Shown here piece after piece: positions 8,516-62,924 of a DNA stretch of 64,000 nt. Numbering within the stretch: the stretch's first letter is position 1; the number at the start of each line of letters is the position of its first letter. This stretch comes from Lepidodermella squamata. Lineage: Eukaryota > Animalia > Gastrotricha. A program made the position numbers and the translations under genes. The notes beneath the pieces are model-generated. The model made no database searches. It had not been told where the DNA came from and saw only the letters and a program-made list of their open reading frames with translations. The stretch is from NCBI GenBank assembly GCA_047495785.1, contig JBLDXI010000007.1:3658001-3722000 (forward strand). Reading direction: 5' to 3'.

Positions 8516-11500
8516 TTAATCCTGCATGCGACCCATGTTGAGCTCGCAGAAAAACCAGCGCCTCGTAATAGGCGATTTTGTGACCCACAGACCACTTGCA
8601 CTGACACTAGAGACAGTTGTCGAAAAGAGACCTCGCATGTTTGCCGTCGTTGTAGTAACGTTGGGGTTCCAGTTCGTGAAAGTCAGCGGATCACCAGATT
8701 CCCATGCCCATGTACCACCAGCATTCGTAAGACCAAGCCACGAATACTCTAGAGCCCCCTGGTCACGTCGACCTAAAGATTATATATTTACGCAATACTC
8801 TGAAAAGGGTGAGTATTGAGTTACGAGCAACAGAGCCGATATGCGAATGCATGAAGTACTGCTCTGAAACCGAGTTGATTTCCAACAACTGCCATCCATT
8901 CATTTGACAGATTGATTTCGCCTCATCGTAAGTTGCTGGGAGCGGGAAATGCTTGTAGCAACTCGCTTTGAATGAAATCTCGCACAACTCTTGCATAGCC
9001 ATCTGGCAAACTGGGCGGGCTGTCCACCACTTGCTGTAGGGGTACCAGTTGAAATCACCCGATTGGTCAGGATTCGGTCGCATAACCGCATAGCCCATGT
9101 ACAGGTCATTCAGCAGAGCCAACGTCGACGGTTCCCAATCAGATTCGGCTTTTTGGAATATAAGATCAGCGGATTAGTTAACGCAAAAATGGAAGACTTA
9201 CGGCACATTGGTATGGATGGACAAAGTGTTGGCACATTCGTTACCGAATCATAACACCACGGCTCAGGGAGGACACTCGGATCTGGGTTGCGGCAATAGT
9301 TGTGCGCCGTTGAATACTCCACAAAGAGCGAAGTGGATGAAGCAAATGGAGTGGTGCTCCATTGTTTGCATGAATTTCCGTTCACAGTTTGCGCGGCAAA
9401 ACCCGCAAATTCGCGGCCAGCCGGCGTGAAACGGCAGTTCATAGGCCAGTTGCTGTGGGCCGCTGAATAATTTTGTGTTTTTTGCTCGTGTTAATTGATA
9501 AGAAGCATTATGATATTTTATACTCACGGTATTCGCAATGAACGCCGTAATTAGTTGCATCAGTTTGCAGAACTTCACTATATGTCAGGCGGAGCCCTCC
9601 GCTTGCCGATTCAGAGATCCCACTCCCAGTCAAGGCCATGGCGTAGCCGGCAGTATTTAGGGCTGACCTGTGACAAGTAAAAGCACCTTCGCGAGAGATA
9701 AACTAGCAATCAAAGCATACGATGTGAATGGTATTGAATCGTTCAGGGGAATGCCGTAACTGGAAACATAAGCTGAAAAAGGTTACACGGATTAAATATG
9801 GCTGGTCTTGTTTCTTGAATACTACTTGAGCCATTGTAATATCCGCCAACCCAACCGTTTGTTACTACGCCGATTACTGCAGGTCCTGCCAAAGTATTTG
9901 TTTTGCGCTCACCATCTTCGGGGCTGAGATGGCACAATCCAAAGAACAGAATGCACATTTTCTGGCCCGTCTGTGTTTCCTCCGCGCGCGCGCTCCTATT
10001 GGTTGACGCGTAAATACACCTCGCTGCCATTATTGCGCAACAAATAATTGCAGCCTTCCTCGCGCGCGCAGCAAAATCTCAACGAAAAAGTCAAAAATTC
10101 AAAGTAACGGGGCATTAGGTGCTGATTGGCGTGGAGTGTATTTACTCCATTCCTCCATTCCGAAGGACTGAAAGCCGACATTTTCGTTGTTCGCGTTTTC
10201 ATAGGTATTTCAAGTTGAATTAAAATTTGAACAGAATTTTACAGAATTGTTCAACATGACGACGCGCGGGTATTTTAGGCTATTTTAGGCCCCAATTTCT
10301 AGCTTTTTAAAACTGAATAATTTTTCATGTAAAAGCGTGTTCTCCGAAAAAATCGCATTCTTTTAAATCAATATTTTTTAATGTTTGCAGCCGGTATTTT
10401 ATCGATAGGAACTGAAAAGGTAGAGGTTTATCAGATAAGGTAATGTGGGCCGCCACGATGCAGTCGTAATTTTTTGTCGATTATCAACAATACAGCCCGG
10501 CATTTTCTTCTCCTTTGACAAGCATGCAGCAGATTTGTCGCTTGTCTCGGACTTAGCGCGCTTGGGGGAGGCTATAATTATCTTAAATTGTGGCGCAACG
10601 AGCCCCAACCAAAAGGAGAGCGCGCGCGGAGGAAACACCGTAGGGCCGGACAATTTGCGGAAGGAATAAATAGCAAGGTGAGACTGGTTACATTGCCATG
10701 CGGGCTCCCATATCACGGCATTTGCCCTCCGCTTTGTCGTACACGTCTTTTGACAAAGGCCACGTATAACGAAAGCATACATCGCGATACCTTGTGAATT
10801 GTCCACAAGTATTTCCCGGAATCGAATCTAGCAAAACTTAGATTTACGAGTCAAGTAGCTAATTGTAATATTCCAGACCGTTAATTATATAAGTATCCGC
10901 TGTAACATTATTCCCGCTGCTGGTTCCACTGAAATATTTTGGCGTACACTGGTTTCCGGCGAATTCCACAGCGACACAGTTAAGCCGGCTTTTTAATAAT
11001 ATTCAGGGTGGACTATTCTTTGTTTTTAAGTTTTCTGATTTACCTCAGACATAGTTGCTTGCACTGATAAGCAGATGATACTGAGAACGGCGAACCAGGG
11101 AAGCTGTTTCCGGCAAATATTGTATCTGCAAGAATTGTCATTTTCGGGCGCCCAGCTATTGCGAATTTTCACAAGGAAATAGTAAAACACAAGAAAGCAT
11201 AAGGTCTTACTAATTTTGAGATAAGTCCAATTTTGCAACATCCCGGTGTAACCTATTCCAAACGTCGATTGTAAAAACCAACAATTTCGCGTCGATGCTC
11301 CCCAAACAAACCCGGTACATTGATCTTTCAAGCTACCGGAACAAATCGTCGCGCATTTTTCGGGATTATTGACATTTTGAAGAGAACGTTCAGTAATAAA
11401 AAAACGGGTGCTTGAAGGGCCACCGTAACCCTTTTTGTAGCCCGGTATTTCGTCGACTCTCCGGACCCAGTGAGACATAGTAAAACGGTAATAGCCAGTC

Positions 11501-39000: not shown

Positions 39001-42000
39001 AGCTCAACTTTGAATGACCAGCTCAAGTTTGACATTATTGCACTCTGAAAATCGCAAATTATGTTGGGCCCATAATATTTAAAAAACTAAGGTTATTTCC
39101 ATTTCAACAGTGAAACGCAAATTCTCTTTAACATTATTGCCCTCAAAACTTACATTTTTACTGTTTTCTGAGCTAAAACTAAGGTAAAACCGGTGGGTGT
39201 AAATAGCAAGTTAACGCGACCCAGCAGGTGGGTGCAAATAGCAAGGATTAGACACCCACTGGGTGTAAATAGCAAGTTATCGACACCCAGTGGGTGTAAA
39301 TAGTCACTTATTGACACCCACTACGGGGGGTGTTGTTGGCCTCGACCTTTTTTTATTGCATAAATTAATAATTCGGCGCACATTGATTTTTGTACGCTAT
39401 TTCCTTACGTGCAGCCGAGGTTTTAAGGGGGTAGTCTAAGTTAAATCTAAATTCATAAGCCTTTTCGGCAACAATTTGGGGTCTCCCATCTTTTATAAGG
39501 ATGGGGGCCTCCTAGAGGTCAGAAATGTAAAAATTCATTATCCTCAAGAACAACTGAGTAGGAATATTTAGGATTCAAAGAAGTCACGTCACGAATCACG
39601 AGTCACGAGAAGTCACGAATCGCCCCTCTTCACGTCAACACACTTTTTGGAATTTGCTGGAAAATACAGAAATAACGCCAAACGGTCAAATTACAAACTC
39701 GAACAATGTCTTATTCGGTCTCATTCTGTTTTGATCTCATAATGTATCTTTGAATGGAATATCAGTAATTGCAAGTCCTTCTCACAGCAATTTACAAGAA
39801 CTCTGCCTTTTCGAACTTTCATTCGTTGAGTTCGCCTCACTTGCGAGGCTAGTTAGATCCGGGCGCGATATCTGTGGCAAACATTCAGTTTTTGGATCAG
39901 TAACAGGATCTTTCAAAGAGTTAGTAGCGTTTTGCAGTTGTTTCAAGAGTAAATTGCGGTATTCTCTGTACCGCTCACTCCCCATAACCATCATAGGAAT
40001 GAACAGTGCATCGCCGACGAATGGCCATGGTTTGGTCCTTTCCCGCCACTGATGTAGCCTTTCCTGTACCATTTGTTCTTCTTCAATAATGCCAGTGACG
40101 ATGAGGACTGTGTTTGTAAGTCGTGGCCTGCTCGCGCCTCCGAATGCTTGAAGTACAGTACGCAGCGCAGTGTAGTGACAAGTGAATAGAACAACATCGT
40201 GTTTGGGCGCTGAAACCAGCCAATCGTCTACACGGGCCGGCCAGTCGACATCGAAATTCGAAATCGAAGGCCCATCGATGAGGTGCAACTTCTTCACTAC
40301 GGTCGACCAGCTATCACTGCCTGCTTCAGTAACCGGCCGTTCTGTTTCTTCAGTCAACAAACTATGAACTTCGTCCGTCTGCCACTTTCCTATACATTTT
40401 GAAAGGGCAATCGATTATTAAAGCTGTAACATGTTAGATCATCTTCACTCTGTCCGATCAGCAACACCATTGTTTTGTTATCTTCAAGCTCGACTGGTCG
40501 ATTCGACAACATTTTGCTTTCGATGTTTGATGTTGACACAAAGTACGAGCAGTGCAATATTTCAAGTTTGATGTGGAGTATGTATAAAGTGCAGAGTGCA
40601 GTAAGTAATACTATTCCTTCTAAGGTCGAGTTAGATGGCCTAAAATTATTGGAAAGCGCGCTTTTAACACTTTACCAGCCAAAAATTGACTGCGAGATTC
40701 GATATTTAGATCTAATTCCTGGGTCTGGCAAAAGTCCTTTTTTCTGGTCAACGATGCGTCGTAGGGCAAAATGCCTGACGGCAAAATGTAGGCCGAATAG
40801 AGCCCGGCGATTCTTTTTGAATTTGGGGCCACAAGGTCCGAGCAGAGGCCTTTGAAAATGACCGTGAAAAAACGTCGAAATTTTGGATTAGAGCCAAAAA
40901 TCATATCCAAGACTTGGATCTAATTATTATTGGATCTCGCAGTCTATTTTTGCAGTTAAAGTGTTAATTTGGGGTGGGCTTACACAACCTGAATCATGCC
41001 CGGGTCAATGGTTTTCTCTTCCGGAACTTGCAGCCGAGTTAAAATATTTCATTTTCCTGTTGCTATATCAGTTTCCTTATCGCAACATCGGTATGGCGGT
41101 ATATCGCCATGGCAGCGAGATAATGTGCTATCTACCGGAGTGTAGAACGAAGCAAGGCAGGCAGCAAACAGTTACGATTTACGATGTACGAAATTTATTG
41201 GCTGAAATGCGTAGAAAGAAGCCTAATTAAAGTAGGCCTCACACAAGCAAAAACAGAAAAAAACACGACTCACTAAGATGACCCAAGAAGGACGGGTCAA
41301 ACTCGATTGAAATAATAGTAGAAGACGCGGACCGGCACGCCACAGAATTAACGGCATTACATATTACGTAGAGCTTCAGGCTGGATATATCTACAGCATT
41401 ATTAAATATGAATTTCGTCCAATCACAACAGTACACAGCGGAATTATCAGAATTAGCGTCATTAATTCATCACTGAGAGAATTCAGCGGCATACTTTAAG
41501 CCTAATATTGCAGGTAAGACGGTTCAATTTTCGAAGCGCCTAAAATTCAAGCCCAAGTCATTTATGATGAGTAAAGTGGCATCCGGTTTCGGCACCGAAC
41601 CCAGCCAATCGCCTAGTCGTACCGAACGCGTGGGATCATAATTTCAAGCGTTGATGAGACGCAATGAGATTGTAAATACAAATTGAGCGAAAATTGAAAA
41701 CTCGCTTGTGCTTGTATTAGGCTTTAAGGATTTATTTGCTAAATTTATCTCATTGTATCGTGCAACAGGTATGCAACAGCCTGCTGACAATCGGCCTATT
41801 CACCGAAGAAGACCTCAGCAAGCTGCTAGCCGTACTCGACCCGAAATCGTTCCCATACGAAACGTTCGAATTCCACTGCACAAAGGGCCTCGTCGAGATG
41901 CAAATCGACGAGCCAATCAAATTCGAACTGTGCCGCATCATGTCAACGCTGTGCGACATCCAACTGCGGCGGCGAGTCGAAGCGCTGCTGAAATTCTCCA

Positions 42001-54000: not shown

Positions 54001-57000
54001 TAATGTTTCCGAATTTTAATGAATAATCGCCTGTCCTTTCAAAGCATGATACTGAGAAAGGCGCCCTTGTATGGATTTTTTTTTTGATGAATGTCAAAAA
54101 TCCTAGTTAACAGTCAACTTTTTGTGTCGAGCAAAGGTTCTCCGAAAGCTTCTGAATTAATTTGCGATTTTTTCGAATCTTTACAGAAAGAAACCGAAGT
54201 CGAAGTCATCGACCACATCAAGGTCCTGCTGGCCAAAGAAGACGAGGTGAGATTTTCTGCCTAATGACCTGAATCGATAAATTATATAAATTTCATTTTT
54301 TCGGAATTTTCCGATATTTGATTATTGATTTATCGATAATTTTTCGATTTCCCATGATCACATTTTTTATCTAATTTTTTTGCTTATTTCAGCCCACCGA
54401 TGACAGCCAGAAATGGCAGAAGATTCTGTACAAGAAAATCGGCGGTTCGTTAGGCGAGGACAACCCGGCGCTGGTCGCCAACAAGGACGCGCGGTACGCG
54501 TGGGGCGCCACTCGCGTCTGCTCCGTCGCCAAGGTCGTCTACGGCATGCACGTCGTCGACCACCCGCAGTTCTTCGCGAAAAACGTGTGGAAGAAGGTGA
54601 TTTCGGTACAGCGCCGTCGCGCCGTGATGGCCTGCTTTCGCATGGTGCCGCTCTATGTGCTACCGCGGCATAGAGCCATCAACCTCTTCCTAACGTGCTA
54701 CTCGACCATGTGGCTAGAAAACGAGCTCCTCGAGACGAACAAACTCATCGAATACCTCACCGGCGATACGGCGACCGGCGAGGACGAGGCAGCCGCGGCC
54801 GCTGCTGCTGCTGCGGCTGAGGCGGCCGGCGGCCCGAGCGCCCAGAGCTCGGCGCCCTCCGAGGCCCCGTCGGCTGCTCCGGCCGCTATTGAGGCGCCGC
54901 CGGGTGAAGGCGCGCCGAACCCGGACCAGGGTGCCGATGCCCCGGCCGAGGAAGAGGCTGAGAAGCCGGATTCGTTGAAGCAGCTGGTTGCAGCTTTCAG
55001 CCGCATTGCGACGGCCGAACGCTCCGATCCGTTGCCGCCGGATGATTTGTTCATGAAAATGGCGAAAATCATGTCGAAATCGTGCTCGGTCGGCGATGAA
55101 GGTGAACCTTTAGAACGAATTTAGAACGACTTGAAATAATTGATCAATCATCAATCAAAAAATTTGATCCACACAAAAAGAAATCTAAATTGATCAGAAC
55201 TGATTTTGATAACAATGGATCAAATTTAGATCAATCATGAGCTAAAGTATCAGAATGTTATCAATTTGATTCACTTTCGATTCGATTAAGCTGATGAAAT
55301 TCTACGGATAATTATTTGTGGATCAAAAAGTTGAATCATTGCAAAGTTTGGATCAATTGAATTTCTCGTTACATTCGGCCGTGTTACAACTTTGTTATTC
55401 GGGTAGGGGCAGAGTATGTATGGATCAATTTGGATTCAAATTTCATAAAGGCGACAAAAAATTGATTGAAAAAGAATTACGTGGAATGCATCCGATCAAA
55501 TCAGGAAAATGAGAAATCAATCGTTGATACGACTGTAATTTCAATCGCGTGAAATTCCAACGCTACTCTCCCAACGGAATTTCGGTCTACTTCTTAAATG
55601 AAATGAATTGCTCTCAGTTTCTCGAAATTCCTTCTGTTTTAAATGTTCATTAACTGTTGTTCCTGCTTTTGCAGGTGATGATGACGGACCGACAGATACG
55701 CTGGAAATGGACGCTGAAGAACAAGCTCGTCAGCTCGAAGAGGACGAACTCGCCAGGCAGAGGTTGTTGGCTGAACAGCGGCGGTTAGCCGAGCGCAGCG
55801 TCGCCGAAATGGTCATTCAGTTCATTGCGGCGTCGCGAGGCGAAATCGGCGACATGGTCATGACGGCTGTTGAACTGGGTATCGCACTGCTAACTGGAGG
55901 CAATGTCGATGTCCAACAACGCATGCTTCAGCATCTCAAGGTTTGAATTTGAAAAATCTCGAGTCTCGATTAAAAATGTTGAGCAATTTTAGAATTTTAG
56001 TTCTGCTGAATCATGAAATTAAGCTTGAATTTTTTATTAATTTTGAAATTTTAAATTTTAAAATTTTGATAAAATTTTAAATGTTTTATATTGAATTGTT
56101 TATTTCGATTTTTCTAGGATACGAAAAATGTCGATTTCTTCCAGTCGATTGCGACCATTCTCGAACGCTCGTCTGTCCTAGATTTGGACGCTTTCGAGCG
56201 TTGCAACAAGGCGCAGGCCCTGGGCATGTCGACCGAGTCGAACCCTGAATTGCAAAATCTGCACGATAAGGACTCGACTTGCCAGTTGTTCCGCTTCTTG
56301 CAGCTTCTCTGCGAGGGCCACAACAACGACAATCAGAACTACCTGCGATCTCAGACTGGGTCGAACGCCTCCGTCAACTTGATCATTTGCACTGTTGATT
56401 ACTTGCTGAGGCTTCAAGAGTCTATCATGGATTTCTATTGGTTCTATTCGAATAAGGAGAGCATCGAAGAATCAGGCCGTGATTGCTTCATGAAGGCTAT
56501 CGAAGTCGCTAGTCAGGTAAAATATTAAAAAATTTATAAGTTTTGAAATTAAATTTAAATTTTAAATTTTAAAAATATTGAAATTTGAATTTTTCATAAT
56601 TTTTGAGTTGAATAATTGAATGCTAATTTTAACAAATTTTAACAGGTTTTCAATACTCTGACGGAGTTTATTCAAGGCCCATGCGTTGGCAATCAGCTCG
56701 CTCTGGCTCATTCGCGTCTGTGGGACGCCGTGGGCGGTTTCTTCTACATTTTCGCTCACATGCAAGAGAAATTGTCGAAAGACCCTGAGCTTATCGACCT
56801 GCTGAAGGAATTTATGGGCCTGCAAAAGGACATGATGGTCCTGCTGCTGTCCATGCTTGAAGGCAACGTCGTCAACGGCGCGATTGGCAAGCAAATGGTA
56901 GACACTCTGGCTGAATCTTCGAGCAATGTCGAAGTAAAAAAACACGAAAAATTCGTTTTTCAATGATTAAAATAATTTCAATATTTTTCAGTTGATTTTG

Positions 57001-60000
57001 AAGTTTTTCGACATTTTCCTGAAAATGAAGGATCTTACCTCTTCTGAAGCTTTCATGGTACGTTTAGACCTAATTTTTTTCTGGGAAGTACCCGGGTCGG
57101 TTTTCGGGAATTTTTGGGACCCTGGGAACATTTTCTTCGATTTTATTGCGAAATTTCGTCGCAGATGTTCGCGAAACAAGGCGTGTCTTGTATGACGCGC
57201 GGTGAGTTGAAGCAGGCGCTGAAAGCTACTAAATATTATGAGAGGTAATAAAGAAAGATAATGACGAAAAATGTGGGAGCGGGCGGACTGATATTTTGGT
57301 TTCGACTAGTTGCTCGCGAGTGGTTCTTAGTTGGTTTTCTTCTGTGCTTGGATTGACGATGAACAAATATTCACAAGTTTTATCGGGCTATTTATTCGTA
57401 AAATTTTTCCTATTTCCGAATCGCACCGAAAAATTCGCCAAATTATACTGCTTGCTCGCCTTTAGTAGCATTATTTTTGTTTTTTATTTATTTTTATTTT
57501 GCTGATTTTCGCTTGATCGTTGTATTGTGTCTTGCCGCCTTGGTGTTGCTGCTGTATAGGAAATCGACGGTGATGGTAATGGGGTCGTATCGGGCAAAGA
57601 GTTCCGAACTGCTCTAGAAAATCAGAAAGTCTACACCAAGTGAGTAAAATCGAAGGCCTGCTTCTTAGCAGCTGGAAGGCTTTTGATGAAAAAAATACTG
57701 ATTGAAAGCTGAAAAGTATTAATATCAGCTTTCATCCACTCATTTTTAGCCCTAGCAGCCGCTGAATATAAAACCTGCTTATAATGAAAATTTACATCGA
57801 ATGAGGCAAAAAACCAGAAACTACTGATTTTATATATTTTCGACGTTTTTTGCCTCATCGTAAAATGGAGCTTCTATAAGCAAGGTTTCACGGCTTTTTT
57901 CGCTCCGACTAAACAATCTGCTTTACAATCGAAGAGATAGTTATAGGTTACACTAACCTTTTTTCTTGATATTTCTTTCAAATTAAAAAATGTAAACATT
58001 TTCTGTGACGAAGGGGAATTGAGAGTTTGGAGTTTGGATTGAAAATGAAATTTCATTAAATAAATTTGAAAAACTATAAATCCAAAAAGATTTGAGAGTA
58101 TCGGGCAACTCTCAACTCCCTGTGTCACAGTTTCTTCACTGATCTCTTAATTTACAAACATTCATGGCTAATTTTTAATGATCTGTAAACTAGCTAGGTA
58201 ATCTTTTCTGGAACAACAACCTTAATTAATGTATAAATTCATAAAATTCCGACACTTTTTCATTCGCATCATTATTTGAATTAGAATTAGTAGAAGATTT
58301 TGCTTTGTTACTGTCAATTTTCCAGCAATTTCTATCGCGGCATTTTATTTACTTTCAATTTTGTCTTTTTTCACTGAATCTTGACGCATGAATTATTCTT
58401 CAGTTTTAACCATTTAGTTATCGATTTTTTAGAATTTTCGATTTCATTTTCTGTTAATTATTTTATTTTGCCTATGTTAGTAGTGACCTGTAACTATCTC
58501 TTTAGCTGATTTTTTTGCGTGTTTTTCTAACTAACCCTAACGTGTGTGAGTGATCAGTCGTCCGCCCCAAATTTGCATGTTTCAGTCGTAGAAAAAATCC
58601 CCTATTAAAAACCTTTCTCAATTTTCCCAGGGAAGAAATCGATTACGTCATGCGGTGTGTCGACGTGAACCAGGACGGCAAGATCGATTTCATGGAATTT
58701 GTCGATCGATTCCACAACCCGTCGAAAGAAATCGGCTACAATTTAGCCGTTCTTCTCACAAATCTTCAAGAGCACATACCCAACGACGTCCGGCTGTCTC
58801 GCCTGTTGGAAAAGGCGAAATCGGTGCTGGAATATTTCCAGAAATACCTCGGCCGCATCGAAATCATGGGCTTGACCGGGCGCGTCGAGCGGGTTTACTT
58901 TGAAATTTCGCAGATCAACATCGAGCAGTGGGAGAAGCCGCAGATTCGCGAGTCGAAGCGGTCTTTCCTGCACTCGGCCGCGGGCGAGGACGGCGATAAG
59001 GAGAAGCTCGAGATTTTTGTCAATTTCTGCGAGGATACCATCTTTGAAATGCAACACGCCTCGTCGCTGTCCAGCGAGGAGCAACAGGGCCCGACGAAAG
59101 CGTCCAAGGACTCAGCGGACGAAGAGGAACAAGGTACGAATTAACGAAAAATTCTCAAAATTTCTGCGGAAAAACTGTTTACTTCTCGAAAAATTCTAAT
59201 TTTTAAGAAATTGAAAAAATTGAAAAATTGAAAATTTGAAAGTAATAAATGAAAAATTAAGCAAAATAATATAAAGTAAAAAATAATTGGTATAAATCCC
59301 GAGATATTTTAAAATTTCGATTTCAATTAAATTTGAAATTCCAATTTTTTTTTAATTTTCGGAAATTTTCTCAATTTTTATTCTGATTCGATTTCCCGAA
59401 ATTATTTTAAAGCCGGAAATTTCTTGAAGCCAGTGCGAAAGTTTGATGTTTTTAATTATTCGCTGAATTTGTTAATAAATTGCAATTTTTTGCTTTCCAA
59501 GGTGCTGAGAAGGATGTTTCACCGGCGCAAATGCTGCTCGGCGTTCTGCGCACGCTGTACGACTTCATCTGGCTGATAGTCGGCCTAATCATGGGCATTT
59601 TCTCGGTGCTGACGTGGCAGAATATCAAAACCGCCTATCTCACGCTCAGCTCCATGACCCCGGGTGACATGGCCCTGGCGGCCGGGCGCCTCCAACTGCG
59701 CCTTCTCATGGCCGGCCTAGGCTATATCGAACTAATAGCTAAAACTCTGGGCCTATTTATCCTAAATATGATGCGGGGCCCGGTGAAGGACGACGAGTCT
59801 ACAGTAGCGCCTGAATCGGTGGCGCCCAGCCCGACGATCCTGAGCAGGGTGCGCCTAGCCGGCCAGCCGTCACCCACGCAGCTGATCCGGCTCGATGACG
59901 ACGATTCGAACGGCGACGAGGAGGAACTGGCTGTTTTCGGCGTGAAAATGCGCAAACGCGATGACGGGTTTGTAGTCACCCCTGACGAGAACGCCCTGGA

Positions 60001-61959: not shown

Positions 61960-62924
61960 ATACTTGGTGATAAATTTGTGATAACATCTTTGAAAATGTG
62001 CGAACAATTCAGAATGCCAAATTTTGCAGCAAATTTATATATATTTCTAAAATTAAACTTTCCGGAACCTCCCTTTTCATGGTGGACCGATGAATTATTC
62101 AATTTACCGGAAGAAACCTGGAAAAAGCCGATGGCAATTGGTTTGATAATTTTCGGAATTTTACCCGGTGGTTTGATCTTGGTTTGATCTTTTAAAAAAA
62201 CTCCGTTTAATTTTGATTAAAAATTAGTAGATCATTTTCCTCCGATTCAAGGTTCCACATTGTGGACTAGTCCTCGTTTGATCTGACTTTGACCCTTCTT
62301 TGATCCTCCGAAGATCTCGATGTGATACCAATTTTATACGACTAAATACCAGAAATTCAAGGAGAATTCCGACAAAACATTGGAATTGAAACGTTGGGTT
62401 ACTTTGAAAATGTTAGGATTTGGGATTTTATTAATTTTTCTGAACATCCATTGGGATTTCTGAATTTTCCAATGTGATTGGAATTATTGTTAGTTAGTAT
62501 CAAATACGATACAGTATCAATTACTCCTGATTTGAGCTACAATTGACCTCTTTCTATTCCGCTTTCAGGTTTGATCATCGACGCCTTCGGTGAACTTCGT
62601 GATCAAATGGAGCAGGTGCGCGAGGACCTTGAGTCCAAATGCTTCATCTGCGGCATCGGCAAAGACTATTTCGATAGTGTCCCACACGGCTTTGAGGAGC
62701 ACACAACACGCGAGCACAACTTCGCGAACTACATGTTCTTCCTGATGCACCTCATCAACAAGGATGAGACCGAGTACACGGGCCAGGAGACGTACGTCTG
62801 GAACATGTACCAACAGCGCGTGTGGGACTTTTTCCCGGCTGGTGTCTGCTTCAGACAGCAGTACGAAGTCGAACTCGGCTACGGCGGCGGCGGGGGCGGT
62901 GGCGGTGGCGGTGGGGGCGATTGA
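19416..62924 (+). CDS. RyR: Ryanodine receptor (intracellular Ca2+-release channel), complete gene, about 5,312 aa
   Basis: Exons: 19416-19469, 19587-19790, 20184-20541, 21050-21735, 22378-22866, 23096-23575, 24043-24472, 24544-25106, 25164-25430, 25646-26013, 26100-26423, 26922-27311 (optional), 27980-28066, 28810-29440, 29920-30106, 32460-33034, 41769-42740, 43645-44478, 45875-46301, 46719-47266, 47871-48032, 48437-48568, 48623-49096, 49368-49883, 50550-51698, 54187-54246, 54393-55101, 55675-55940, 56118-56516, 56646-56933, 56992-57057, [57165-57244 or 57560-57639], 58631-59133, 59502-60331, 60681-61755, 62569-62924. Sum 15,939 nt, in frame. Hallmarks: N-terminal SFLRT and [31 protein letters not shown] domains, RyR repeats, CaM site [27 protein letters not shown] and TEFIQGPC Ca2+-site residues, EF-hands, pore [25 protein letters not shown]-terminal CFIC/H/H zinc site. 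Confidence 0.97.
26588..26797. mobile_element. MITE-like inverted repeat in RyR intron 11
   Basis: AGCAGAAAAGAATGAAGCAAATTTC at the left end matches the reverse complement of GAAATTTGCTTCATTCTTATTCTGCT at the right end. Confidence 0.5.
26922..27311 (+). CDS. RyR: Candidate optional RyR exon in divergent region 2 (390 nt, phase 2-2)
   Basis: Pyrimidine-rich acceptor ...GAGTAG|, GC-rich coding-like Ser/Pro/Arg-rich frame, weak donor AG|GTCCCG; symmetric and skippable. Confidence 0.6.
30451..31437 (+). CDS. Intronless TMEM268-like membrane protein nested in RyR intron 15 (same strand)
   Basis: 328-aa ORF with two adjacent TM segments. Motif order matches my recollection of TMEM268: YRRTVGDAL (YRSLAESAL), [17 protein letters not shown] (VIQLWFVYFDLENCVQFL), C-terminal [12 protein letters not shown] (RH..PCPCQL). 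RyR exons 15 and 16 join without it. Confidence 0.7.
   Translation: MFALSNYTHAESRDSSRRSSQERRRATVMAGVRWINQPLTGSTAHLPGPLPSDLFHVVALARFEMCGLFEPEIHVVGRTQFNKHLASPAYRRTVGDALTELLERAHLNASWHFTLQPLFTLIALCFTLSGIFGVLMIGGFRSKVAIVSLALILPATAFFSTMYLLRLRNAALIRATNYLSQWALVHNARNLVSPKELFITLGNDRFATITIQFYALATHACIPPLAALSVRLAGKPRLKIFLARTLEQLCGSSSIWFALLMQELPYWRIVTATLVTLWLAAFDERLVTAEYRHVYDKLCLCQLGARVEKMVANPSTLCSPRSIITQPT
33052..33084. repeat. (ATT)11 microsatellite
   Basis: Perfect trinucleotide run just after the RyR exon 16 donor. Confidence 0.9.
33693..35629 (-). CDS. Nested antisense gene (about 457 aa): unknown N-terminal domain, degenerate P-loop (AIG1/GIMAP-like) domain and CaaX box
   Basis: Exons (minus): 35629-35156, 35107-34985, 34866-34859 (8 nt), 34803-34774 (30 nt), 34481-34369, 34318-33693. 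All GT-AG, sum 1374 nt, in frame. Motifs [14 protein letters not shown] (G1 position), LIIDGP (G3), [15 protein letters not shown]; ends CKLL. Confidence 0.72.
34526..34754. mobile_element. hAT-type MITE in an intron of the nested gene
   Basis: 14-bp TIR CAGGCCTAGCCAAC / GTTGACTAGGCCTG (1 mismatch) flanked by an 8-bp target duplication TATTATAA / TATTAGAA. Confidence 0.75.
35914..35949 (-). ncRNA. Degenerate minimal type I hammerhead ribozyme motif (Penelope-like element type)
   Basis: Minus strand reads CC-CUGAAGA-U-GGC-ccaauaaa-GCC-GAAAC-AU-GUC-GG: both core boxes, a 3-bp stem II, palindromic ACAUGU stem III and a GUC site. Stem I is only about 2 bp. Confidence 0.45.
36313..36472. mobile_element. 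Possible pogo/Tigger-like MITE remnant
   Basis: TA-CAGTG... start, repeated AAACCGGAC / GTCCGGTTT motifs, ...TCAACTG end; TIRs degenerate. Confidence 0.3.
37320..39330. mobile_element. About 2-kb element with long inverted subterminal repeat arrays (non-autonomous DNA transposon)
   Basis: TATTTACACCCACCTGCTGGGTCGCGTTAACTTGCAATTTACACCCACC (about 37357-37405) is mirrored by GGTGGGTGTAAATAGCAAGTTAACGCGACCCAGCAGGTGGGTGCAAATA (about 39192-39240), with tandem GGGTGTAAATAG units. Exact ends are uncertain. Confidence 0.6.
38146..38268. mobile_element. 123-bp MITE
   Basis: 27-bp TIR CAGGGTGGCCACAAAATGCCGCAGAGG with one mismatch to the reverse complement of the right end; no clear TSD. Confidence 0.7.
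39782..40512 (-). CDS. Second, 5'-truncated paralogue of the nested pseudo-GTPase/CaaX gene (about 223 aa)
   Basis: Exons 40512-40449 and 40389-39782 (672 nt, in frame): [29 protein letters not shown]...LIDGP...HDVVLFT...LTNTVLIVT...SSCKLL. Clearly homologous to 33693-34481, with the same intron position. Confidence 0.65.
40668..40963. mobile_element. piggyBac-like MITE (TTAA target duplication)
   Basis: TTAA-CACTTTACCAGCCAAAAATTGACTGCGAGAT ... ATCTCGCAGTCTATTTTTGCAGTTAAAGTG-TTAA; about 50-bp imperfect TIRs. Confidence 0.7.
53033..53062 (+). CDS. RyR: Candidate 30-nt cassette microexon of RyR ([10 protein letters not shown])
   Basis: TTCTAG| acceptor after a long pyrimidine tract, donor TG|GTAAGG, phase 0-0 matching the host intron, no stop. 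Confidence 0.5.
57165..57244 (+). CDS. RyR: RyR mutually exclusive exon 32A, degenerate EF-hand 1
   Basis: CGCAG| ... AG|GTAATA, 80 nt, phase 0-2; encodes [26 protein letters not shown](R). Confidence 0.8.
57261..58589 (+). promoter_or_regulatory. Predicted long-range intronic RNA duplex (splicing switch): 57261-57292 paired with 58553-58589
   Basis: GGGAGCGGGCGGACUGAU pairs with AUCAGUCGUCCGCCCC (16 bp, two bulges), extended by AUGACGAAAAAUGU pairing with GCAUGUUUCAGUCGU. Both arms are GC-rich islands in AT-rich introns and bracket exon 32B. Confidence 0.65.
57560..57639 (+). CDS. RyR: RyR mutually exclusive exon 32B, canonical EF-hand 1
   Basis: TATAG| ... AA|GTGAGT, 80 nt, phase 0-2; encodes [26 protein letters not shown](K). 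Confidence 0.9.
61915..61956. repeat. (CT)21 microsatellite
   Basis: Perfect dinucleotide run in the last RyR intron. Confidence 0.95.

Follow-up and report, generated by a model that had tools for sequence, protein, structure and literature searches.

The 64,000-nucleotide (nt) stretch of Lepidodermella squamata DNA analyzed here (contig JBLDXI010000007.1, positions 3,658,001 to 3,722,000; hereafter the window, to which all coordinates refer) contained on its plus strand the 3' half of a ryanodine receptor (RyR) gene. Two tandem alternative exons of this gene, 32A and 32B, were each followed by an AT-rich intron, and the two introns contained complementary segments that were predicted to pair as a long-range RNA helix around exon 32B, possibly favoring the joining of exon 32A to exon 33.

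Tandem EF-hand exons and the reading frame

The local exon-intron structure was re-derived from the sequence, and all the features described below lie on the plus strand. The constitutive exon 31 (56992-57057, 66 nt, phase 0) ended in the donor ATG/GTACGT and was followed by two alternative exons of 80 nt each. Exon 32A (57165-57244) had the acceptor cgcag/ATG and the donor GAG/GTAATA, in which position +5 is not G, and exon 32B (57560-57639) encoded a canonical EF-hand 1 with an EIDGDGNG...E loop and had the donor CAA/GTGAGT; the 32A donor (GUAAUA) was weaker than the 32B donor (GUGAGU). Exon 33 began at 58631 after the acceptor ttttcccag/G, was traced as far as 59090, and encoded EF-hand 2 and the region downstream. 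The introns between exons 31 and 32A, 32A and 32B, and 32B and 33 were 107, 315, and 991 nt long, respectively, and the latter two had GC contents of 0.37 and 0.32. Exon 33 and its neighboring exons gave a RyR translation, and the relatives recovered included proteins named "ryanodine receptor" in their source. The translation of exon 33, read from 58632, showed 55-75% identity with RyR orthologues, and the 22-residue translation of exon 31 showed 62-91% identity with orthologues in nearly all loci and 48% in the most distant one.

Exons 32A and 32B were paralogous, equal in length, identical in phase, and arranged in tandem. Exon 32A corresponded to a paralogue of EF-hand 1 without the calcium-ligand residues of the loop. 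When 20196 stop-free 27-residue windows from the three forward frames were scored against 16 orthologous EF-hand-1 peptides, exon 32B ranked first, with a profile score of 63.7 that was the best in the window, and exon 32A ranked second. Exon 32B was 42-59% identical to the orthologous exon in approximately 25 loci. As judged from these translations, exon 32A is a genuine EF-hand exon paralogue and not an accidental open stretch.

There was no 32A-like exon in any of 39 related loci, and the duplication of the EF-hand-1 exon looks lineage-specific in this comparison. The genomic relatives, which reached at most 69% identity on exon 33 in the protein search, had one EF-hand-1 exon and introns of approximately 50 nt, which left no room for a second exon. 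The closest relatives were metagenome contigs with 71-75% identity on exon 33 (Ga0123360_1101566, Ga0115594_1127196, Ga0123370_1041863, and Ga0123366_1068344), in which exons 30-33 were contiguous, intron-less and cDNA-like, and only the B-type exon was present. These contigs probably represent transcripts from small, related invertebrates present in environmental samples, and a nearly complete RyR message may be contained in one source contig of 16.7 kb. No record was returned by an exact look-up of the product of the exon-33 open reading frame.

The reading frame by itself constrained the use of the two exons. In the joined frame of exons 31, 32A, 32B, and 33, a stop codon occurred at codon 67, and when both alternative exons were skipped, a stop codon occurred at codon 112. 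Double inclusion or double skipping of the 80-nt exons thus leads to a premature stop, and therefore the frame alone bars productive aberrant mRNAs. The helix is unnecessary for exclusivity at the mRNA level and could only cut waste and set the ratio of the two forms. An earlier interpretation made from the DNA alone (the sequence-only reading) had assigned the exclusion mechanism to the helix, which is too strong a statement, and had also argued that the 315-nt intron between 32A and 32B was too long for steric exclusion, which holds.

Run X2 (2015, 'RNA?'), which was near-identical to the window, was considered as transcript evidence and rejected. It yielded low-depth intron pieces within strand-alternating chimeric contigs and no splice joints; it is probably DNA and is silent on exon use. 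The X2 contigs on 57828-58355 and 58649-58815 consisted of chains of 45-60-nt pieces on alternating strands with a spacing of approximately 50-70 nt, intron included, and looked like an artefact of DNA assembly from short paired reads.

Predicted fold and energy of the intronic helix

Arm 1 of the helix, the selector-like arm (57261-57292), started 17 nt into the intron between 32A and 32B and comprised a distal part (57261-57274) and a GC-rich core (57275-57292). Arm 2, the docking-like arm (58553-58589), ended 41 nt before exon 33 and comprised the core (58553-58568), an internal loop (58569-58574), and the distal part (58575-58589). The duplex of the two arms had an energy of -34.1 kcal/mol by RNAduplex and contained 29 pairs, of which 15 were G-C, 11 A-U, and 3 G-U. 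This recount agreed with the sequence-only reading in the coordinates, in the offsets of 17 and about 40 nt from the splice sites, in the number of pairs (about 29 including G-U), and in the AT-rich nature of the introns. Most of the stability lay in the core, which formed 16 base pairs (bp) with two single-base bulges (-25.5 kcal/mol), and the A/U-rich distal part contributed a duplex of -8.9 kcal/mol, separated from the core by the 6-nt internal loop.

The helix was present in the minimum free energy (MFE) structures of both 57245-58630 and 56992-58700, with pair probabilities that were mostly 0.8-0.997 and had a mean of 0.83. The arm regions were reciprocal best partners within the exon cluster by a margin of 6-7 kcal/mol. 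In this arrangement exon 32B would lie inside a 1.26-kb loop and the 32A donor would be brought beside the exon 33 acceptor. Arm 1 lies just beyond the stretch of the 32A donor that binds U1, and arm 2 precedes the region where the branch point and polypyrimidine tract of exon 33 are likely to lie. Complementarity, position, and dominance in the predicted fold were thus established by the calculations. The proposal that the helix juxtaposes the 32A donor and the exon 33 acceptor and sequesters exon 32B was partly supported by this geometry, by the predicted dominance of the helix in the fold, and by the match to a stem of the Drosophila serpent gene described below. A looser duplex of -47.6 kcal/mol was obtained when 57245-57330 was paired with 58500-58630; it extended the pairing zone to 57251-57327 on the arm-1 side, with 58507-58619 as the partner, and it was not relied on, since the extra pairs were broken by large loops.

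The donor of exon 32B was itself largely paired in the predicted ensemble (mean unpaired probability 0.15), with 57638-57649 pairing with the U-rich tract 57482-57493 of the upstream intron. Such A/U-rich, low-complexity pairing over the 32B donor might weaken the use of 32B.

The strength of the pairing was compared with several backgrounds. When whole introns were searched against each other, the observed energy was reached by 3 of 300, 42 of 1000, and 32 of 1000 dinucleotide shuffles in three comparisons. In a search confined to 60 nt of intron downstream of the 32A donor and 100 nt upstream of exon 33, 8 of 1000 dinucleotide shuffles reached it, and the same targeted regions in real sequence with the same spacing reached it in 72 of 1190 cases overall and in 2 of 235 GC-matched cases. 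The arm-1 region found an equally strong partner in 23 of 364 unrelated real segments of 991 nt (2 of 55 at a GC content below 0.38), and the arm-2 region in 104 of 770 unrelated real segments of 315 nt (5 of 304 at a GC content below 0.40). As the strongest long-range helix in the MFE structure of 1386-nt sequences, it was matched in none of 60 dinucleotide shuffles and in 2 of 46 real low-GC windows. A further metric, in which 50-nt windows were scored for duplexes with the whole intron, was driven by GC-rich exons and made a poor null. In most matched nulls, the helix therefore ranked in approximately the top 1-5% of comparable sequence, which is suggestive and is insufficient for a site that was chosen by eye.

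Comparison with known systems and a proposed role

The closest parallel to the RyR helix was stem II (Us-Dd) of Drosophila serpent (srp), in which an intronic element located between exons 4.1 and 4.2 pairs with one upstream of exon 5 (Yue et al. 2016, PMC4691838). Use of exon 4.1, the proximal and weaker exon, depends on stem II, which acts via splice-site approximation together with suppression of the exon in the loop; an upstream stem I competes with stem II. Conservation of the elements extends across Drosophila species, and compensatory mutations provided the proof of them (PMC4691838). As in srp, the RyR cluster contains two alternative exons, and the two elements lie in the intron separating them and shortly before the constitutive exon that follows. 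In RyR the predicted pairing would, as it does in srp, place the distal exon in a loop and draw the donor of the proximal exon toward the acceptor of the constitutive one. In both genes the splice sites are weaker at the proximal exon (in RyR, at the 32A donor), and skipping of both exons is out of frame. In contrast to srp, no stem I above chance was found in RyR. A search for a stem I between the 31-32A and 32A-32B introns gave an energy that was reached by 199 of 500 shuffles, and a search for an upstream stem between the 31-32A and 32B-33 introns gave one that was reached by 282 of 500. The RyR helix also differs from srp stem II in that it is known from sequence alone and one of its arms is partly variable within the species.

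The sequence-only reading had likened the helix to the docking-site and selector pairings of arthropod genes. In Dscam1 exon 6, 14-3-3xi, and Mhc, one docking site is paired by several competing selectors (PMC6071210, PMC4691838). The RyR cluster resembles these systems in that intronic RNA pairing, here as a proposal, picks one member of a set of tandem duplicated exons. Unlike in these systems, the next-best partners of arm 2 were weaker by at least 7 kcal/mol, and there was no second partner (selector) for arm 2 after exon 32B, so that the cluster has one pairing and not two or more exclusive ones. Competition of the Dscam or 14-3-3 type was thus not borne out, there being neither a competing selector nor a stem I above chance. 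Under the duplication model of Ivanov and Pervouchine, each exon should be followed by a paralogous selector, whereas the intron starts after 32A and 32B shared only a 10-nt match. We infer that a competitor pairing is not strictly necessary when a cluster has two exons.

Outside arthropods, a comparable case is the pair of human ATE1 exons 7a and 7b, for which five conserved elements, competition of R1 and R4 for R3, and an ultra-long-range pair are described (PMC7797038). RyR would share with ATE1 a mutually exclusive exon pair outside arthropods that is governed by intronic base pairing including a long-range helix, RyR control being a proposal, and would differ in having a single helix and no competitor. 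An alternative exon pair in RyR is itself known from insects, such as Cnaphalocrocis medinalis, in which a mutually exclusive pair encodes residues 1136-1168 in the second SPRY domain (PMC3342285). The gastrotrich gene is like the insect gene in carrying such a pair; unlike the present pair, the insect pair lies in SPRY2 and not in the EF-hand pair. In our literature searches, the only mutually exclusive RyR exons were those of this insect SPRY2 region, and neither RNA-structure control of RyR splicing nor any work on splicing control in gastrotrichs was recovered.

From these comparisons, we propose that the long-range intronic helix is a one-sided fidelity or bias element of the srp stem-II kind that favors the joining of exon 32A to exon 33, and we give this reading a probability of roughly 45%. 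An effect on exon choice is plausible and partly supported, and it is unproven. Under this proposal, the helix would play no part in transcripts in which exon 31 is spliced directly to exon 32B, as arm 1 would be removed with the intron. In transcripts in which exon 31 is spliced to exon 32A, arm 1 would be retained and would pair with arm 2 once arm 2 had been transcribed. With this pairing, exon 32B and its splice sites would sit in the 1.26-kb loop, and no more than approximately 60 nt would separate the weaker 32A donor (GUAAUA) from the strong exon 33 acceptor. Exon 32A would then be joined to exon 33 rather than to exon 32B, with the result that less of the out-of-frame 32A+32B product would arise and the EF-hand-dead isoform could be made. 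Productive exclusivity would still come from the frame and, presumably, nonsense-mediated decay, and the helix would raise efficiency and not create exclusivity.

Alternative explanations and significance

Several observations weigh against a role of the helix in splicing. The site was picked by eye, after looking, and the whole-intron searches placed the helix at just the 3-4% level relative to shuffles. In real sequence with the same two-intron geometry, in which exons and introns were mixed, the observed energy was reached in 233 of 596 cases, in 13 of 78 low-GC cases, and in 5 of 23 cases of the lowest GC content. On average, the best duplex of shuffles (-28.6 kcal/mol) was stronger than the core alone (-25.5 kcal/mol). 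Other helices of 21-22 bp with probabilities of up to 0.99 and with no evident role were predicted in the same 1.7 kb. Searches of database runs gave no run that showed transcription of the locus, and hence no RNA support for the use of 32A; furthermore, none of the 39 related loci combined introns with a 32A-like exon.

One of the neighboring helices, 57931-57951 with 58483-58503, comprised 21 bp within the intron between 32B and 33, had a probability of 0.99 (20 nt with 90% complementarity in the repeat search), and bore no evident relation to a splice site. It shows the ease with which long-range helices arise in this sequence.

A second version of the intron came from X1, a DNA run of the same organism that was approximately 1% different from the window and gave one well-supported contig over 57130-57624 at a depth of 92. 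Relative to the window, the X1 intron lacked 3 nt at 57254 and 7 nt at 57260, had C in place of G at 57273, and had a T inserted at 57334. Of these four differences in the 315-nt intron, two fall in arm 1, which thereby lost 7 nt of its 5' end in addition to the substitution at 57273, and there was no compensating change in arm 2. The best X1 duplex, at -33.7 kcal/mol, was reached by 116 of 1000 shuffles. Be it a natural variant or a product of assembly, the X1 intron, one of the two versions known, is no better than chance. The core of the X1 version was still predicted to form, with a probability of approximately 0.99 in context; evidently the helix can do without its distal third, or that third is under no constraint. 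In X1, the core of arm 1 was unchanged and arm 2 was identical (the contig over 58409-58858 had no differences), which carries no weight as a conservation signal at 1% divergence. In the exons, A to G at 57179, the only polymorphism of 32A, and G to A at 57625 in 32B both affected Gln codons and were synonymous. Statistical support for the helix was moderate and depended on the null: the pairing ranked in the top 1-5% in most matched comparisons, and was unexceptional, at 12-40%, with the X1 version or looser nulls.

Fortuitous complementarity is almost as likely an explanation as an element of the srp stem-II kind. It holds that a GC-rich patch of 18 nt in an AT-rich intron has a chance match 1.3 kb away, and that the helix either does not form in vivo, owing to co-transcriptional splicing, proteins, or helicases, or forms with no selected role. 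Splice-site strength and trans-acting factors would then determine exon choice, with exclusivity left to the frame and nonsense-mediated decay. Besides the frequency of equal energies in same-geometry sequence, the X1 result, and the uncompensated changes in arm 1, this explanation draws support from the comparable helices nearby, from the lack of a stem-I analogue or a second selector, and from the premature stops upon inclusion of both exons or neither, which mean that no RNA device is required. On the other hand, most matched nulls placed the helix in the top few percent, and both arms lie beside exactly the two splice sites that the model needs, a placement with a chance of approximately 1%. 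Without a device, moreover, the 32A donor would normally join the nearest acceptor, that of 32B, and every 32A transcript would be wasted.

Circular RNA formation is usually driven by inverted intronic repeats on either side of an exon, and the arms flank exon 32B; the arms could in principle drive back-splicing of 32B into a circular RNA. This is improbable, as a single 80-nt exon is far shorter than typical single-exon circles. The runs likewise showed no joint of any type, although they held no true RNA data.

An origin of the arms in a mobile element or dispersed repeat unrelated to splicing, for example as terminal inverted repeats, is the least likely explanation and was largely refuted: although strong inverted repeats of probable transposon origin occur elsewhere in the window, neither arm recurred in the 64 kb with up to 3 mismatches allowed, the GGGCGGAC octamer and its complement occurred only at the two arms in the same 64 kb, the depth of the X1 contigs over both arms was at the single-copy level, no Rfam family matched the arms (the sole Rfam result being a sub-threshold SNORD51 match elsewhere), and a conserved coding exon lies between them. 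The arms are thus not copies of a dispersed repeat, a possibility that the sequence-only reading had raised against its own proposal.

The inverted repeats in question lie in other RyR introns, at 9952-10069 with 10556-10659 and at 40664-40728 with 40901-40967. They were very strong, with compact duplexes of approximately -89 and -74 kcal/mol, respectively, and look like foldback or terminal-inverted-repeat mobile elements. In the RyR coding sequence, there was an alanine-rich low-complexity insert with a run of approximately 10 Ala, and the C-terminus closed with a run of approximately 13 Gly after the conserved final motif (54546-55124 and 62571-62924, respectively).

Beyond the srp-like action of the helix, a more ambitious picture can be drawn, which we consider unlikely as a whole. 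In that picture, the RyR EF-hand-1 exon of a gastrotrich would have undergone a lineage-specific duplication that brought with it a one-stem, competitor-free fidelity device, a single long-range helix that would enforce the joining of 32A to 33 only in transcripts that retain 32A. It would be the first case outside arthropods and vertebrates of mutually exclusive splicing guided by RNA structure, and it would toggle the EF-hand of a Ca2+ release channel between Ca-binding and ligand-dead forms.

If the complementarity is fortuitous, it serves as a warning that a 29-bp helix of -34 kcal/mol beside splice sites can be found by eye and yet represent just the top few percent of what chance produces in AT-rich introns. 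If the helix does guide splicing, RNA-pairing control of mutually exclusive exons would have arisen independently in a little-studied phylum, alongside a young exon duplication. A two-exon cluster would then need one stem only, acting after the first splice choice and with no competing pair, and the helix would provide a handle on how the animal toggles Ca2+ sensing in its ryanodine receptor.

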